A stretch of DNA of 64,000 nt, taken from the sequence record PQ287642.1; one strand, 5' to 3'. This document shows positions 3,317 to 47,244 of the stretch, in pieces. Made by a program: the position numbers and the translations under genes. The notes under the pieces were generated by a model that did no database searches, was not told the DNA's origin, and saw nothing but the letters and a program-made list of their open reading frames with translations. The stretch's first letter is position 1. Each line of letters opens with the position of its first letter.

Positions 3317-4918
3317 ATGCAAGAGCTTGATATGGATAAAGAAGACAATTATCCTGCTGAGGGTAATTGGGAACAGCAAGCTGATGCAGAAGTAGAACAG
3401 GGGCCCACGGGTCCCACTCTACCAGACGCACCTGCGGAAGAAGTATCTTCTTCGCCTGCTGTTGAACTACCTCCACTGGTAATTGACCAGAAACCAGTTA
3501 ACTTCACTGAGACACGTTCTTGTTCTAGTGAAGCTATTCCTGGTATGACCTCTTTGATGAGTTTCATTCTAGAAAACCCCAAGACCTTTAACCAGGTATT
3601 GGAACGTCACTCGGCGCTATTGAATGGAATGCACCAAGGTGATCTCACTACTACTAGCAGTGACCGAGATTGGTTGATTTCTCTAGTAGCTGGTATGAAC
3701 CATACTAACCTTGACCCCACTCCTATCGGTGGGACGGAACGTGAAGGTTCTGTATGGCAACAAGGTATTACTGGTCATGATAACGGTAACCTTATTCGAC
3801 CAGGCCGCCCTTCTCAAAAGATCGATCGTAATAAACGACACAGTAAAGAAGAACTGTTGGCATACCTCTCCAAGAAATCTGGTCTTGGTGCGACATACGA
3901 AACGTTTATGCCTCGTTCGGGTATCTGGCTTCGCCTGCGTGCTCCGACACTTACTGAAGTAGTCGCATTGCAAACAGAAATGCAGCAGATCAAGCTCCGG
4001 CTGGGAATGCAAACCAAAGGCATGTCGTTCTCTAACGCTGGTTCCGTAATGATGAACGCGATGACTGACCTGGCTCTGTCTTGTGTTATTGCATCGAACA
4101 AGTCCTTCATTACTCCAAGTGACCTGGAACATGAACTATCGATCTTTGATGAAGCTATCCTGCATCATGCCCTAGCTTCTACAATGTACATTGATGGATT
4201 CAACTACGACGTTCCATGTATTGCAGACCCGGACAACTGTACGGCTCGTATCACTGCAAAACTTAACATGTCGTCTATCGTTTGGTTTGACAACACTGTA
4301 TTCAGTAATGATCAGCGTAAATTTATAGCTAAGAAATTTGCACCTGCTACGGATGAAGACTTCAAAGCTTACCGTGAAGGTTTCGGTATTGGCGGTAAGA
4401 AAGTATTCTGGTTTGGTGATATTGGTGTTCGTCTTGCTATCCCGACTATCGCTCAACGTAAGATGGCTGCTTCTCAGTGGTCTCAGACATTGATCGAAAT
4501 GTCTCAAGGTACATTTAACGAACCGCCACATGGTGTTCAACGTTCAGCGTACATTGATAAACTGAGTAAAGCTACTATCGCCATGCAGTACGCTCATTGG
4601 GTAGATGGTATCTATGAAAAGGACGACGATGTAGAAGACTTCGAAGATCAACTGCTTTCCGACGATCAAGAAATCATTAGTGATTATCTGGCGAACACTC
4701 TGAGTGATCCGCAGTACGCGGAGCAGTTCTTTGATACCGTACATGAGTATACTAACTCTTGTGTACTGGCTGTGGTAGCTCTTCCATCGCATAACTGCAA
4801 AGAATGTAAAGGTCCTCAGGGCCAAGCATTCAACGAACGTTTCCCGCACCTTGTACCGCTAGACATGATGGCAATATTTTTCACGTTGGCGGGCCAGAAA
4901 GCCAAGCACCTGGAGTAA
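3317..4918 (+). CDS. Putative tail/baseplate-hub assembly chaperone (T4 gp26-like / gpG-like; phiKZ gp77-like)
   Basis: 533 aa; two Cys pairs (VPCIADPDNC, HNCKEC) and a C-terminal PLDxxxIFF ending typical of myophage tail chaperones; function is inference. Confidence 0.55.
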   Translation: MQELDMDKEDNYPAEGNWEQQADAEVEQGPTGPTLPDAPAEEVSSSPAVELPPLVIDQKPVNFTETRSCSSEAIPGMTSLMSFILENPKTFNQVLERHSALLNGMHQGDLTTTSSDRDWLISLVAGMNHTNLDPTPIGGTEREGSVWQQGITGHDNGNLIRPGRPSQKIDRNKRHSKEELLAYLSKKSGLGATYETFMPRSGIWLRLRAPTLTEVVALQTEMQQIKLRLGMQTKGMSFSNAGSVMMNAMTDLALSCVIASNKSFITPSDLEHELSIFDEAILHHALASTMYIDGFNYDVPCIADPDNCTARITAKLNMSSIVWFDNTVFSNDQRKFIAKKFAPATDEDFKAYREGFGIGGKKVFWFGDIGVRLAIPTIAQRKMAASQWSQTLIEMSQGTFNEPPHGVQRSAYIDKLSKATIAMQYAHWVDGIYEKDDDVEDFEDQLLSDDQEIISDYLANTLSDPQYAEQFFDTVHEYTNSCVLAVVALPSHNCKECKGPQGQAFNERFPHLVPLDMMAIFFTLAGQKAKHLE

Positions 4919-4956
4919 TCAACGAGGACCCCCGGCATAGTCGTCTAACAATTAAT

Positions 4957-5379
4957 TTGGAGGACGACAACGGGCACGTTACAATGAACTCTTTCGGTCG
5001 CAAGACTGTTAATGGTAAGAGTGCATTCGATGAACTCGTGCGAACGCTAGATGCCGTAAGGCCAGCTATTGCCGAAATGTTGACCAGGAAGGCCTACCAT
5101 AAAGACTACGGTATTTTCGATCATGATTCACCAGAGGCTGATCCTTTAGATCTGGTTAGAATGCATCCTAAGGAAAACGTCGTAGAAGGTGGACCTGAAA
5201 GAACTTGGATACGGAAGTTTGTCAATTACAAGATCAATGACATTTATGGTTTATCTTTACTAGAGTTCTTTGAACTACCCTTTAATGATTGTTTGTTCAT
5301 GATTGAACTTGCAGAGTCGAAGGCTATTCAAAGTACATCGCAAGCTAGACAAATCGAGAAAGATCTTGGATTAAAATAA
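4957..5379 (+). CDS. gpT/T4 gp51-like chaperone extension (phiKZ gp76-like); probably made as a -1 frameshift fusion
   Basis: YGLSLLEFFELPFNDCLFMIELAE motif; no well-spaced RBS; frame open from 4810 across the 3' end of the upstream gene. Confidence 0.55.
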   Translation: MEDDNGHVTMNSFGRKTVNGKSAFDELVRTLDAVRPAIAEMLTRKAYHKDYGIFDHDSPEADPLDLVRMHPKENVVEGGPERTWIRKFVNYKINDIYGLSLLEFFELPFNDCLFMIELAESKAIQSTSQARQIEKDLGLK

Positions 5380-5394
5380 AAAAAAATAAAGCAT

Positions 5395-5427
5395 AGCTCC
5401 TACCCGAAGGTAGGAGCTTTATGCCGT
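5395..5427. terminator. Bidirectional hairpin with TATG tails
   Basis: AGCTCCTACC-CGAA-GGTAGGAGCT between convergent genes; TTATGCCGT on +, TATGC plus a U-run on -. Confidence 0.85.
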
Positions 5428-5428
5428 C

Positions 5429-5668
5429 TTACACTTGTGCTTCAATCATCATGAAAAGACCACCCAAGAAGAGAGTGATCAGCGCTACGATAGCAGCTCC
5501 CCATATGAGAGCAGTGCAAATCATATTAATGCGGTCGAGCATGATGATATCTTTCTTGGGTAAACGAGTTCGACGAACATCATCGTTATCTTTTACCAGT
5601 TTTGCTACGAACAGGGACCCAGCGATAATCGAAATAGAGATCCACCAGATCAGCATGATGGTTTCCAT
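5429..5668 (-). CDS. Small membrane protein (2 TM)
   Basis: 79 aa, two hydrophobic segments flanking a basic loop. Confidence 0.75.
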   Translation of the reverse strand: METIMLIWWISISIIAGSLFVAKLVKDNDDVRRTRLPKKDIIMLDRINMICTALIWGAAIVALITLFLGGLFMMIEAQV

Positions 5669-23436: not shown

Positions 23437-24903
23437 TTAAGCTGCTTTCGCCAACCATTCTTCCAAGGACGGAAGATAGTCCTCGTGAGCATAGTTGATG
23501 ATGGTCTCTACTACCGGACCTTGTAGTTCCAAGTTACCCGAGATCTCGTGCGGATCATCAGGACTCAGTACCCAAGTATGCGGAGCGATTCGTTCAGTTG
23601 CATTAGCCAGATAGTTATCGGGCATCAACGTCAAATTCAACTGATCGCCGTCGAAATCCGCATTAGGAGCTTTAAGACAGAGGACCGACATGCTGATCGA
23701 GTTATCGCGAATGTCATTCTTGATAACGGTGATGAAGAACTGTTGAGTCGAACCACGTTGCAGAGTCGGGTTGCGGTGGAATACACAAGGAAGACCCTTA
23801 TACTTCGATTCCGCGATGATCTCTTTGAACAGTTGATCGATGACTTCGTTGTACTTCAGAACGTTCTCGTAAATGAACGAGTTCGCTTGGCGAGTCGTCA
23901 TACGGAATTTGCGTTTGAGCTTGTTGATCAGATGATACTTCAACAGCTGACAACCGACACCCCACGGAATGTGAAGTTCATCGTAATCATGCGGATCACT
24001 GATAGAAGTAATTACTGCACGCGCAGTCAGGTTAAGACGACCACCTAGTACATGTCGACGAACCAAACCGGGTTTCTGTGCAATTCGTTGTTTGTCGTAG
24101 TTCTCGTGGAAGATAGCTAGAAGCTTCAGTGCACGAGCTACACGGTTTTGTACAGTGATTGGTTTCAGCGGAATTGCCGAACTACCGATACTACTAATAG
24201 TCAGTACCGCATCGATTGCTGCGCCGATCGGCTTATCGATGTAAACACCCGAGGTCGTAGACTCTACAACGAAGCAGAGTTTAGTTGGGATCGGAATGTT
24301 CTTCGGGAACAGATGTTCTTTATTCTGGTTAACGAATGCAGCCATCTCACCTTTGTTGGTATTGATGATACTGCTATCGAGCAAGAACTGGAAGATCGTA
24401 TCGAAGTTCTGAACGAAGTTGTTCAGTCCACGCGGGAACTGGCGAGCCAGCAACTTGTCAAGTTTCCGTTTTGTTTCCTTCGAACTGATCGTATCGTAAT
24501 CGTACTGATACTGGGTGTTGGTCAGATACTCCAGGAAGTCGAATTCTTTCATCGACATATAACCTGAAAGCATAATCCACAACTCGGGACTCACCAGACG
24601 ATCCACCCCTTCCGGTGCCCGAATCCACATCGATGGAACGATGGGTCGGTTGCTCGTGCTTACTACTGGTGTACCGCAGTTATCGCAGATTACCCCAAGC
24701 TTGTATGCTTCTGTGATATGCTCACAGTCACACGAAGCTGAGTTCTCGATCGCATCTGCATCCTGATAATGGGAGAACAGATAACGTTGGAATTCCTCCT
24801 TTTGTTCAGCATTGCTGGTATTAAAGTCATTAGCGAATACTACTTTACCTCTTTGGTTAGCGAGCATCTCGTCATGATTGACAACCTGAGCATATAGACC
24901 CAT
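23437..24903 (-). CDS. Non-virion RNAP catalytic beta' N-terminal subunit (phiKZ gp55-like), uninterrupted
   Basis: NADFDGD catalytic motif, HRNPTL, RAVI, N-terminal Zn ribbon (CDC...CDNC). Confidence 0.95.
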   Translation of the reverse strand: MGLYAQVVNHDEMLANQRGKVVFANDFNTSNAEQKEEFQRYLFSHYQDADAIENSASCDCEHITEAYKLGVICDNCGTPVVSTSNRPIVPSMWIRAPEGVDRLVSPELWIMLSGYMSMKEFDFLEYLTNTQYQYDYDTISSKETKRKLDKLLARQFPRGLNNFVQNFDTIFQFLLDSSIINTNKGEMAAFVNQNKEHLFPKNIPIPTKLCFVVESTTSGVYIDKPIGAAIDAVLTISSIGSSAIPLKPITVQNRVARALKLLAIFHENYDKQRIAQKPGLVRRHVLGGRLNLTARAVITSISDPHDYDELHIPWGVGCQLLKYHLINKLKRKFRMTTRQANSFIYENVLKYNEVIDQLFKEIIAESKYKGLPCVFHRNPTLQRGSTQQFFITVIKNDIRDNSISMSVLCLKAPNADFDGDQLNLTLMPDNYLANATERIAPHTWVLSPDDPHEISGNLELQGPVVETIINYAHEDYLPSLEEWLAKAA

Positions 24904-24927
24904 ACCTACTTCCTATTATGTCTCGAC

Positions 24928-24964
24928 AAAAAAAGGAGATAGAAGCGGCTCCCGAAGGAGCCGC
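24928..24964 (-). terminator. Intrinsic terminator closing the chmA 3' region
   Basis: GCGGCUCC-UUCG-GGAGCCGC, stem extension, then U7. Confidence 0.85.
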
Positions 24965-25295
24965 CTTATCTACTATCGATGGACCACCAACGGAGCCTGG
25001 CACGATCCTAGCATCGTCTACAAAGCTTAACCTCCGCTCTTCTCTGTAGCACTTTGACACTAGGACCTTTTACCATCCATCGTTGTTTGATCACACGTTA
25101 CCCAAGAGTAACTCCTTTCGGTTAAGTGATCACTCACGGCCCGTGTAGCGAGAGGTCGACCTAGACTTTACGCCCACTAGTCGATTACTTCGCGGAACCT
25201 ACTCCTAACCGTTATCACCGAAGTGAACCAGGGTCGCAGTATTTGAATCGGGATGCCAGCCTTCTGACACCCCTATCAACCGGGGGAGTTGTTTC
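24965..25295 (-). ncRNA. Candidate large structured RNA 3' of chmA, class unknown
   Basis: No credible ORF; about 51% GC; at least 8 helices, UUCG/GAAA/CUUG tetraloops, possible pseudoknot. Confidence 0.7.
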
Positions 25296-27161
25296 TTAGT
25301 ACAGAGTACCAACCGAACCTACCATGTTCATCTGGTAGCCGCCACCAACGCCCATGCCGTTGACAACCTGTGCGGTAGAACCGACAGCGAAGTCTTGGAT
25401 CATGGTGTTGCCAACGAAGCGCTGAGCACCGAAGACCTGTGCAACGTTGTCCATTGCTACAGTCAGACCAGCAGCAGCAATCGCCTTATCCAGACCCTCG
25501 ATGAACTTCGGGTTGAAGATACCACGATGTGCACGAGTGGTGTAGGTTACAGCACCTAGGAACGCACGGTCGTAGTTCTTGGATTGCTTGTTACGCAGTT
25601 CCGGATGGATGTTCGGGTTGCATTGAGTACCGTACCAGGACATCCACTCTTGTTGGTTGCCCTCAGCAGCGTTCAGTGCACCCAGTGCATCCAGGTCACG
25701 ACGGTCACGTTTCTCGTCGCCATCCCAGTAGTAGCCCTTGTTCACTTCAGTGCCAGTCGATGCAATGATCGGCTGAGTGTTGAAGTCGAAGAAGCGCTCG
25801 AAGCCACCACCAACCAGGTTCTGTACAGCGCGAATGATCGCGGCAGTAGCTTTCTGTTGGTTCGGGCCACCCATGGCATCCAGGAAGATTACGTCCAGTG
25901 CTGCGTTGTCGCCCATGCGATCCAGATCGATCAGGAAGGACGGGTTCGGACGAACCATGCTCAGCATCAGATCAGCGAAGTTCTGATCGGTGAAGGTATC
26001 GGACTTGGTATCGATCTTCTTACCCAGGTTGGACAGCCAACCCAGAGCACCGATGTCACCCAGGTCTTTAACTTTACCAACTTGAGGCAGGAACTTACGA
26101 GCCCAAGCCTGGCCAGCGGTTACGCGGAAGGCGTTCGACAGAGCGAAGAGGTACAGTTCCAGAGTGTTTGCCTTGATCCAGTTGGCCTGACGAATGTCGG
26201 TTACCAGGATCGCCGGGGAGAACGGCGGCAGCGGTTGGGTCTGTTGACCGAACATCTGGGCTTGCGGAGTGGGGGTGTACTCCAGGGTTACTTGTACCGA
26301 CACCTGGTTCAGCATGGTGTCTGCTTCGTAGAACTCGTTCTCTTGCTGACCTTGTTTCTTGGTACGGTTCAGGCTGATCACGATATCGGACTTGATCGGG
26401 TTACCGACGCTGTCCATTACCGGACGACCGGAGAAGTCCATCTTGGCAGCCAGGGTTTCATCTTGACCGCGCAGCATTGCGATCTGGAACGGAGTCTCGC
26501 CAGCTTTCTTAGCCAGAACGTCGTCACACAGGTTGACGGAACGGATCAGAATGTCTTTCAGCAGGACTTCGTCTTTCAGATCGAATTCAGCCGGGATCGG
26601 CAGCGGGCCAGCCGGGTGTACTTCAGCCTTCGGACGACCGGTGGTCTGACGAACGAATTCGCAGATGCGGTTCCAGTACTGAACGGTGAATACGTCTTGT
26701 ACTTCGACGTCTACATCGAAGCGATCGTGGCTCATGCCGTTCTGAATGGTAACCTGACGCGGAGGCAGGGTGATTGCCGGGTTCGGCATGATCAGCGGAC
26801 GAACTACGATGATACCGTTGCCACCAGCAGCGTGCTTGACGATCAGCAGCGCGGAGTAGCCAACACGGTTGGCATCACGGTCGAAACGCAGAATCTGGAA
26901 ATCGTTTTCCAGGTCTTGATGGTCGATGGCATCTTTGCCAACGCGGGTCATTACTTGCAGCGCTTCGCTCGCACGGGCGTCGCCGCCATCAGTACGACCG
27001 GAACGTTTGAACATGTTCGGCAGGCCGGAAATACCGCCTTGCAGAGCTTGAGGTGCAGCTTGTTGCATACGAGGAGCTTCCTGTTGTGCGCGCGGAGCAG
27101 CTTGAGCCGGAGCGTTGTTGGCTTGAGCTTGAGTGTTTTGAGTTTCGGTATCACGAATCAT
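25296..27161 (-). CDS. chmA: Chimallin, major phage-nucleus shell protein
   Basis: 621 aa; GGDARASEAL, LRFDRD, QENEFYE, FALSNAFR, DIGALGW, DGDEKRDRRDLD and NAAEGN match my recollection of 201phi2-1 gp105. Confidence 0.97.
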   Translation of the reverse strand: MIRDTETQNTQAQANNAPAQAAPRAQQEAPRMQQAAPQALQGGISGLPNMFKRSGRTDGGDARASEALQVMTRVGKDAIDHQDLENDFQILRFDRDANRVGYSALLIVKHAAGGNGIIVVRPLIMPNPAITLPPRQVTIQNGMSHDRFDVDVEVQDVFTVQYWNRICEFVRQTTGRPKAEVHPAGPLPIPAEFDLKDEVLLKDILIRSVNLCDDVLAKKAGETPFQIAMLRGQDETLAAKMDFSGRPVMDSVGNPIKSDIVISLNRTKKQGQQENEFYEADTMLNQVSVQVTLEYTPTPQAQMFGQQTQPLPPFSPAILVTDIRQANWIKANTLELYLFALSNAFRVTAGQAWARKFLPQVGKVKDLGDIGALGWLSNLGKKIDTKSDTFTDQNFADLMLSMVRPNPSFLIDLDRMGDNAALDVIFLDAMGGPNQQKATAAIIRAVQNLVGGGFERFFDFNTQPIIASTGTEVNKGYYWDGDEKRDRRDLDALGALNAAEGNQQEWMSWYGTQCNPNIHPELRNKQSKNYDRAFLGAVTYTTRAHRGIFNPKFIEGLDKAIAAAGLTVAMDNVAQVFGAQRFVGNTMIQDFAVGSTAQVVNGMGVGGGYQMNMVGSVGTLY

Positions 27162-34296: not shown

Positions 34297-34440
34297 ATTT
34301 CCTCTCTTAAAATTTGATCTTTCAAGAGATGGCTACGCTAAAACGGAAAAAAATTAGGACACCCAATGGATGTCCAAAGATTGAGCGGTAGCACATCAAA
34401 TTACTTTCACATATTGATGTGCCACAAGGTAAAAGTTCGC

Positions 34441-34471
34441 GACGACATATATGCCCTCCGAGTGGAGGGCA
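34441..34471 (-). terminator. Hairpin with TATATGTCG tail
   Basis: TGCCCTCC-ACTC-GGAGGGCA. Confidence 0.7.
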
Positions 34472-34477
34472 CTATGT

Positions 34478-46872: not shown

Positions 46873-46911
46873 TTTCGGTTTTTCCAGTTTTACGAGTTAA
46901 TATTCAACTAG

Positions 46912-46929
46912 GTAATATAGATTTGAAAT
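46912..46929 (-). promoter_or_regulatory. Early promoter (consensus)
   Basis: ATTTCAAATCTATATTAC. Confidence 0.85.
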
Positions 46930-47210
46930 CTTTTTTACTACTGGGTGGATGGGGCTTTGTAGCCCCACGACACCCTCTTCCAAGTTTTGCGACATAGTCG
47001 TTTTTATTTCCCTACCCCCGTACTAAAGAATAAGGAAATTATATATGGGACCCCCCCAAAGGGTCCCCCCCACATATAATTACTATTTATATAAAATTTC
47101 TTTTAAAGAAAAAGCATTTAATAAGGAAAATACTCTTTATTAAAGATATCTATTCTTTAACAACAAGTTACTTATGCGCGGCCGGCCCCGCGAAAAAAAA
47201 AATAAAGTGG
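46930..47210. other. Non-coding region with inverted repeats, C7/G7 tracts and an AT-rich tract (origin candidate)
   Basis: See finding; the structure is directly visible, the function is inferred. Confidence 0.45.
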
Positions 47211-47215
47211 AATAA

Positions 47216-47244
47216 CCCTCTCCCGAAGGAGAGGGCTTTATGCC
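47216..47244. terminator. Hairpin with TTTATGCC tail
   Basis: CCCTCTCC-CGAA-GGAGAGGG. Confidence 0.8.

Follow-up and report, generated by a model that had tools for sequence, protein, structure and literature searches.

A conserved structured RNA directly after the chimallin gene of a Pseudomonas aeruginosa jumbo phage

Why should the gene for the nuclear shell protein of a jumbo phage be followed by several hundred nucleotides that seem to encode no protein? We asked this of a 64-kb stretch of DNA (record PQ287642.1, hereafter the window) from a Pawinskivirus of the PA1C/PS119XW type, in which chmA (25296-27161, minus strand; stop codon at 25296-25298; full-length Pfam match to PF25677, Chimallin_Phikzvirus, 1101.8 bits) and the gene for the N-terminal part of the non-virion RNA polymerase (nvRNAP) beta' subunit (23437-24903, minus strand; Pfam RNA_pol_Rpb1_2) are separated by a 392-nt spacer at 24904-25295. 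The original prediction, made from sequence alone, was that about 330 nt between the chmA stop and a UUCG/U7 terminator form a large, densely structured non-coding RNA matching no recognised family, co-transcribed from the early chmA promoter and associated with the phage nucleus. Its coordinates and letters proved correct, and the observation itself holds. Its interpretation is only partly supported, since RNA-level selection, the lack of a known family and co-transcription stand up, whereas a general role in the phage nucleus does not appear likely.

We first tested whether the spacer could be coding. Each frame contains 5-11 stops, the longest ORFs are not conserved, substitutions between the window and phiKZ fall 19/19/17 over the three codon positions, and indels are not multiples of three. 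Two short "hypothetical protein" genes annotated inside the RNA in the Pawinskivirus HPP-Temi (positions 134-241 and 387-575 of the stretch we label L023) are not conserved ORFs and are probably spurious, and in Psa21 one such annotation, gp057, lies on the opposite strand of the spacer (4362-4604 of stretch L009). The G+C content over 24961-25260 is 0.507, against 0.44 for the whole window. The claim that other spacers are short and AT-rich is only partly true, as the median gap is 71 nt but seven gaps reach 290 nt or more.

Next, we examined whether the predicted folding exceeds chance. The 368-nt stretch folds at -142.4 kcal/mol on the minus strand, with z -4.70 and 0 of 100 dinucleotide shuffles as good, whereas the plus strand gives z -1.53. 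Without the terminator the core still gives z -3.6, and the phiKZ core gives -2.6. Folding energy alone does not single out this locus, however, because among the twelve largest spacers of the window four reach z of -4.5 or below on at least one strand. The strongest of those tested, 34297-34477 on the minus strand (z -5.8 to -6.75), is a 181-nt run of four consecutive near-perfect hairpins with a 33-nt block 91% identical to phiKZ. Another, the 372-nt spacer at 46873-47244 just downstream of the Dip gene (gp37), folds well on both strands (z -4.7 and -4.1), contains a 120-nt block (47026-47145) that is 80.8% identical to phiKZ, and may be another conserved non-coding element. What distinguishes the chmA spacer is the highest energy density (-0.375 kcal/nt), the strand asymmetry, the G+C content and, above all, the comparative evidence.

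A sequence search recovered the spacer, once per genome, in 57 phage records, all from P. aeruginosa phages: Pawinskivirus (96-100% identity; 100% to phage HHBS36_1 and 99% to PA1C and PS119XW), Phikzvirus (83-86% over about 360 nt; in phiKZ between gp54 and gp55) and PhiPA3 (core only). Against 85 kb of phiKZ, this RNA is the best-conserved 300-nt block of the entire window, at 0.85, followed by a coding block at 0.82, with a median of 0.65. By contrast, ChmA of the window is only 48.5% identical to phiKZ ChmA in amino acids, and four-fold synonymous sites of chmA and the nvRNAP gene are 30-43% identical, which is saturated, while the RNA is 83-85% identical. Co-conversion by a homing endonuclease was considered as the cause of this identity, since in phiKZ an HNH/NUMOD endonuclease gene (gp56; 4664-5668 of the phiKZ stretch L001) splits the nvRNAP beta' N-part gene, separating gp55 (420 aa) from gp56.1, which matches the last ~68 aa of the intact 488-aa gene of the window. 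We rejected it because the gene lying between is only 64.5% identical in nucleotides; the window and PhiPA3 lack this insertion.

To define the structure, we combined RNAalifold on 12 sequences with the originally proposed helices into a curated model of three domains followed by the terminator. Domain 1 (25140-25284, minus strand) is a four-way junction closed by the long-range helix P1 (CCCG/CGGG; 25284-25281 with 25143-25140), with P2 (25279-25276/25246-25243) stacked on hairpin P2a (25273-25250), arm P3 (25241-25200, UUCG tip) and arm P4 (25193-25148). Compensatory changes occur in P1, P2, P2a, P3 and P4, all helices of this domain are 98-100% paired in 13 sequences, and the phiKZ sequence folded alone returns the same architecture. 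Domain 2 (25089-25131) is a three-way junction in which P5, GAUCAC/GUGAUC, encloses CC-GAAA-GG and GUUACUC/GGGUAAC together with the conserved strand CACUUAACC; in HPP-Temi an A-U to G-C change occurs here. Domain 3 (24977-25082) is a long irregular hairpin made of P6 (25082-25075/24984-24977), P7 (25067-25056/25015-25004), P8 (25049-25042/25025-25018) and a 16-nt apical loop, with G-C to A-U double changes in P6 and U-A to G-C in P7. The terminator (24928-24970) comprises an outer GAUA/UAUC stem, an inner 9-bp G+C-rich stem GGCGGCUCC-UUCG-GGAGCCGCU, then CC and U7 (24934-24928), and the ribosome-binding site of the nvRNAP gene begins about 10 nt after the U run. A simple terminator scan missed it because the outer stem separates the 9-bp stem from the U run, but the hairpin and U7 are plain in the sequence, form in the minimum-energy (MFE) fold and are conserved after chmA in all relatives.

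Most of the originally proposed helices were confirmed, positions included: GGGGUGUCAG/CUGGCAUCCC, UCAC-UUCG-GUGA, the three-way junction with its two hairpins, CGAUGGAU/GUCCAUCG (with G-C to A-U covariation), the 12-bp helix (two positions of which mismatch in the phiKZ clade) and CUACAGAG/CUUUGUAG. One, GAG(U)AGG/CCUCUC, is contradicted, because a C-to-A change in the phiKZ clade breaks it, and is replaced by the covarying alternatives UACU/AGUA and GCGAAG/CUCUCGC (C-G to U-A), which close the four-way junction that had not been foreseen. The proposed pseudoknot between loop GCGGAG (25037-25032) and CUCCGU (24995-24990) is possible, but its six standard pairs are invariant in 12 sequences, so the pairing is neither supported nor refuted, and both partners are absent in PhiPA3.

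On 12 sequences 97.9% of pair cells are standard pairs and 7 pairs show changes on both sides, while sliding the partners by 1-3 columns gives 35-41% pairing and 0-1 such pairs. A covariance model of the 314-nt core found PhiPA3 at 51.9 bits (E 4e-13), aligning domains 1 and 2 through two large insertions but not domain 3, which is replaced there. With PhiPA3 added, giving 13 sequences from three genera, 97.4% of cells are paired and 14 pairs show double changes, against 32-41% and 0-1 pairs in slid controls, and 0 of 500 shuffles reach the observed values. PhiPA3 rebuilds several helices with different letters: P2a becomes GGGGUGUAC/GUACAUCCC, P3 gains a GAAA tip in place of UUCG, P4 becomes GUGGUAG/CUAUCAC, P5 becomes AACCAC/GUGGUU (two double changes), and the adjoining hairpin reads GUCACUC/GGGAGAC. 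Most of the covariation nevertheless rests on few independent events, as only three clades are represented, and MAFFT sub-alignments were not structural enough to build separate domain models. Between the window and phiKZ, 18 of 21 substitutions in paired columns keep the pair, and paired columns diverge 11% against 21% for unpaired ones. The unpaired strands are kept exactly in PhiPA3: the junction strand J3/4, GUAGGUUCCG (25193-25202), the strand CUACACG (25142-25148; P4 end, J4/1 UACA, P1 start) and CACUUAACC are identical across the window, the phiKZ clade and PhiPA3, apart from one C-to-U change within GUAGGUUCCG in the Phikzvirus isolate T2P. Hairpin tips and the PhiPA3 insertions vary, which is the pattern of a functional RNA core.

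These data bear on whether the element acts as DNA or as something other than RNA. Many pairs are G-U and would be A-C on the other strand, so the RNA is sense to chmA. An A-run followed by TACT (AAATACTG, 25244-25237, minus strand) loosely recalls the published description of the phiKZ middle-promoter motif (PMC8244752), and a similar AAAUACUGG sits in the hairpin loop of the 201phi2-1-type UTRs. Yet the strand-asymmetric folding, the compensatory changes, the absence of ORF conservation or periodicity, the absence of group I or II intron hits and the position between two intact genes rather than inside one make a DNA-level element (promoter, origin or packaging signal), a degenerate intron or mobile-element remnant, or a hidden small gene very unlikely, despite the homing endonuclease nearby in phiKZ.

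We then asked whether the RNA belongs to a catalogued family. Searches of Rfam 15 (4227 models, including riboswitches, ribozymes, 6S, tmRNA, RNase P, GOLLD, ROOL, OLE and HEARO) with the window, phiKZ and PhiPA3 versions gave no family match even at E<=10; the best hits score 15-21 bits against gathering scores of 34-55 and cover only the terminator hairpin. ARAGORN finds no tRNA or tmRNA in the whole window, and the arms of the four-way junction are far longer than tRNA arms. Multi-way junctions with invariant unpaired strands are typical of aptamers and ribozymes, and the element sits directly upstream of a terminator and a gene start, so a ligand-sensing or self-cleaving RNA that controls the downstream nvRNAP subunit or separates the two messages can be envisaged. 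We consider this doubtful, given the Rfam result and the replacement in PhiPA3 of domain 3, which abuts the terminator; inspection by eye revealed no stretch complementary to the 5' strand of the terminator that could serve as antiterminator, and the terminator forms in the MFE fold.

The distribution of the RNA is narrow. It is confined to three genera of P. aeruginosa phages (Phikzvirus, Pawinskivirus and Miltoncavirus). The covariance model detected nothing in the spacers of 201phi2-1, Phabio, Viktualia, D6, Psa21, Noxifer, a 325-kb IMG/VR contig (L005) or a 290-kb metagenomic contig (L025), and an approximate search of these spacers for the four invariant strands found nothing ordered. Pattern scans of IMG/VR returned only PA7 and PhiPA3, and two scans of bacterial genome contigs gave first nothing and then a single Cyanobium hit, a chance match with no model hit. 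Other relatives fill the slot differently. 201phi2-1 (~4855-4890 of stretch L004), the 325-kb contig (~4936-4970) and Viktualia (~4293-4335 of stretch L007) have shorter spacers sharing a different hairpin, whose stems differ completely but stay paired around a conserved loop CCUAAAU(A/G)CUGGNUAAA, and some also have a GGGAUCGAAAGGUCCC hairpin right after the stop codon. Unrelated orphan ORFs of 83-188 aa without PHROG match occupy the slot in the 290-kb contig (2679-2930), Phabio (4549-4821 of stretch L006), 201phi2-1 (5047-5613) and Viktualia (4524-4856); the first, the only locus returned by a metagenome scan with the nvRNAP protein, is an 83-aa ORF (ATG start; 88 aa from the upstream TTG) in place of the RNA. 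Psa21 has an unrelated 435-nt spacer, and D6 and Noxifer have only the terminator. The terminator is therefore the ancestral, sufficient device for ending the chmA message and alone can set the ChmA:nvRNAP ratio, so the additional 300 nt have a separate role, and the RNA is an accessory occupant of a variable slot rather than a universal part of the phage nucleus.

The phylogeny of the RNA is incongruent with that of its neighbours. The flanking proteins place the window with PhiPA3 (nvRNAP 85% identical to PhiPA3 gp54 against 67% to phiKZ gp55; ChmA 65% against 49%), while the RNA places it with phiKZ (83% against 62%). Mosaic tracts also occur inside the RNA (alignment columns 220-245, window 25068-25043, and 151-205): the Phikzvirus isolates SL2, T2P and PA7 carry the Pawinskivirus-type P7 strand (in SL2 and PA7, 88% to the window and 69% to phiKZ, while domain 1 is 99% phiKZ-like), and HPP-Temi carries phiKZ-type letters in domain 2. 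Either the module has moved between co-infecting genera, or PhiPA3 alone remodelled it under otherwise extreme constraint, and in both cases the pairs have been kept; the high identity to phiKZ may partly reflect recent transfer rather than constraint. The host-restricted distribution, the variable slot and this incongruence might point to an accessory host-interaction or anti-defence RNA, a decoy or sponge for a host protein or defence sensor that spreads as a cassette between co-infecting jumbo phages. This reading is unlikely on present evidence, as Rfam gave no resemblance to host RNAs or known decoys, exact-pattern scans found no copy in bacterial genomes, there are no tandem repeats like ToxI, and the three genera are also each other's closest relatives, so that host restriction may simply be ancestry. 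An RsmA sponge was rejected because GGA is not enriched (6 counted by eye, about 8 expected from composition), and a CRISPR-repeat mimic because the only resemblance to the I-F repeat is a 7-nt GTTCACT. The broader and equally improbable version is that the RNA is a transferable RNA-only accessory gene acting in trans, as decoy, ligand sensor or catalytic RNA, whose invariant junction core would be essential for infection of this host.

What, then, might the RNA do? Published phiKZ maps place PHIKZ054 in a six-gene operon with early and middle promoters (Wicke et al., PMC8244752), which fits co-transcription with chmA and partial read-through. Consistent with a 3' UTR origin, no sigma-70-like promoter lies in the spacer and the only terminator is the shared one. 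The phiKZ Grad-seq, dRNA-seq and ONT-cappable-seq papers, the 201phi2-1 transcriptome paper, the ASO and Tn-seq papers and a jumbo-phage review do not describe this RNA, although the Grad-seq and ONT-cappable-seq surveys listed other ncRNAs. The only functional hint is a statement by Enustun et al. 2024 (PMC11077065) of ChmC eCLIP peaks between chmA (gp53) and gp54 in PhiPA3, which the authors took as a sign of small regulatory RNAs bound by ChmC. These coverage peaks are also the only indirect evidence for a discrete processed species. This lends outside support to one of the originally listed functions, a ChmC ligand, but it is one sentence about the homologous PhiPA3 spacer, ChmC showed little sequence specificity overall, and ChmC is conserved in all chimalliviruses while this RNA is not. 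The ribozyme, shell-scaffold and localisation ideas remain hypotheses.

Our leading but tentative explanation, held with less than even confidence, is that the fold, transcribed as the 3' untranslated end of the chmA message, is a specific protein-binding platform rather than a mere terminator or spacer. In this view most transcripts would stop at the terminator, placing the fold at the 3' end of the most important early mRNA, and read-through would supply the nvRNAP gene; the strands GUAGGUUCCG, CUACACG and CACUUAACC would form the recognition surface, with the nucleus-associated RNA-binding protein ChmC as the best candidate partner. Binding would either aid the stability, export or translation of the chmA message in cis, or leave a stable 3'-UTR-derived RNA acting in trans. 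Our analysis establishes an RNA that is real, non-coding, strand-specific, structurally constrained, restricted in distribution and phylogenetically incongruent, with a near-invariant junction core fused to the chmA terminator; the operon context and the crosslinking signal come from others, and the transcript ends, the protein partner, its binding and the effect are inferred. The closest rival, which we regard as unlikely but not remote, is a purely cis-acting 3'-end element without a specific partner, protecting the message from 3' exonucleases and RNase E and tuning read-through. Its location after a very highly expressed early gene and immediately upstream of a conserved terminator, the structured chmA 3' UTRs of other shapes in relatives, such as the 201phi2-1-type hairpin and the 435-nt Psa21 spacer, and the hairpin-rich spacers elsewhere in the window favour it. 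However, a stability element needs structure rather than sequence, whereas here 7-10-nt junction strands are nearly invariant across genera with saturated synonymous sites, and D6 and Noxifer manage with the terminator alone. Two further ideas gave nothing: pairing between the 5' and 3' UTRs of the chmA message is no better than shuffles (z -1.7, -0.8 and +0.9), and a ribosome-binding role was dropped because Shine-Dalgarno-like loops (GGAGG, AGGAG) are not kept in PhiPA3.

phiKZ is the model nucleus-forming phage and chmA its key early gene, and the uncatalogued element attached to this message is better conserved between genera than any protein-coding stretch of the window. The element sits in the best-studied jumbo phage and is readily testable. 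If a function follows, it would offer a concrete handle on how early messages are handled (stability, export from the infection vesicle or nucleus, local translation), on what ChmC recognises, and on whether jumbo phages trade RNA-only modules during co-infection; it also adds a candidate family to RNA databases.

Phage UTR-embedded structured RNAs without assigned function are already known, and the nearest are those of Pseudomonas phages (phiKZ 3'UTR_PHIKZ298 and 5'UTR_p40, Gerovac 2021; PAK_P3 ncRNA1/2, Putzeys 2024). Like the present RNA they are phage-encoded, structured and lie in an untranslated region of a protein gene, the 3'UTR-derived ones sharing that gene's terminator, but they are 90-210 nt long with two stem-loops, whereas this one is about 330 nt with two multi-way junctions and cross-genus covariation, and neither survey listed it. 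The large structured ncRNAs GOLLD, ROOL, OLE and raiA of phages and bacteria are likewise long, multi-domain and non-coding, with conserved junctions and an association with phage; the present RNA has no sequence or structure match to them in Rfam, is smaller, sits at a fixed position in an mRNA 3' UTR rather than free-standing near tRNAs, and has a very narrow distribution. Flavivirus exonuclease-resistant RNAs (xrRNA/sfRNA) are also viral 3'-UTR folds with junctions, and the possible pseudoknot and a potential stable non-coding product would extend the parallel, but xrRNAs block a 5'-to-3' exonuclease and no homology was found. Terminator-coupled riboswitches share a conserved multi-junction fold directly upstream of a terminator and a gene start, although here no known aptamer matches, no alternative antiterminator pairing was seen by inspection, and the domain next to the terminator is not conserved in PhiPA3. 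Finally, the last 43 nt are exactly an intra-operon intrinsic terminator of the kind that sets gene ratios, lying between a highly expressed gene and a less expressed one, while the preceding 300 nt are dispensable for that role, because D6 and Noxifer have the terminator only.
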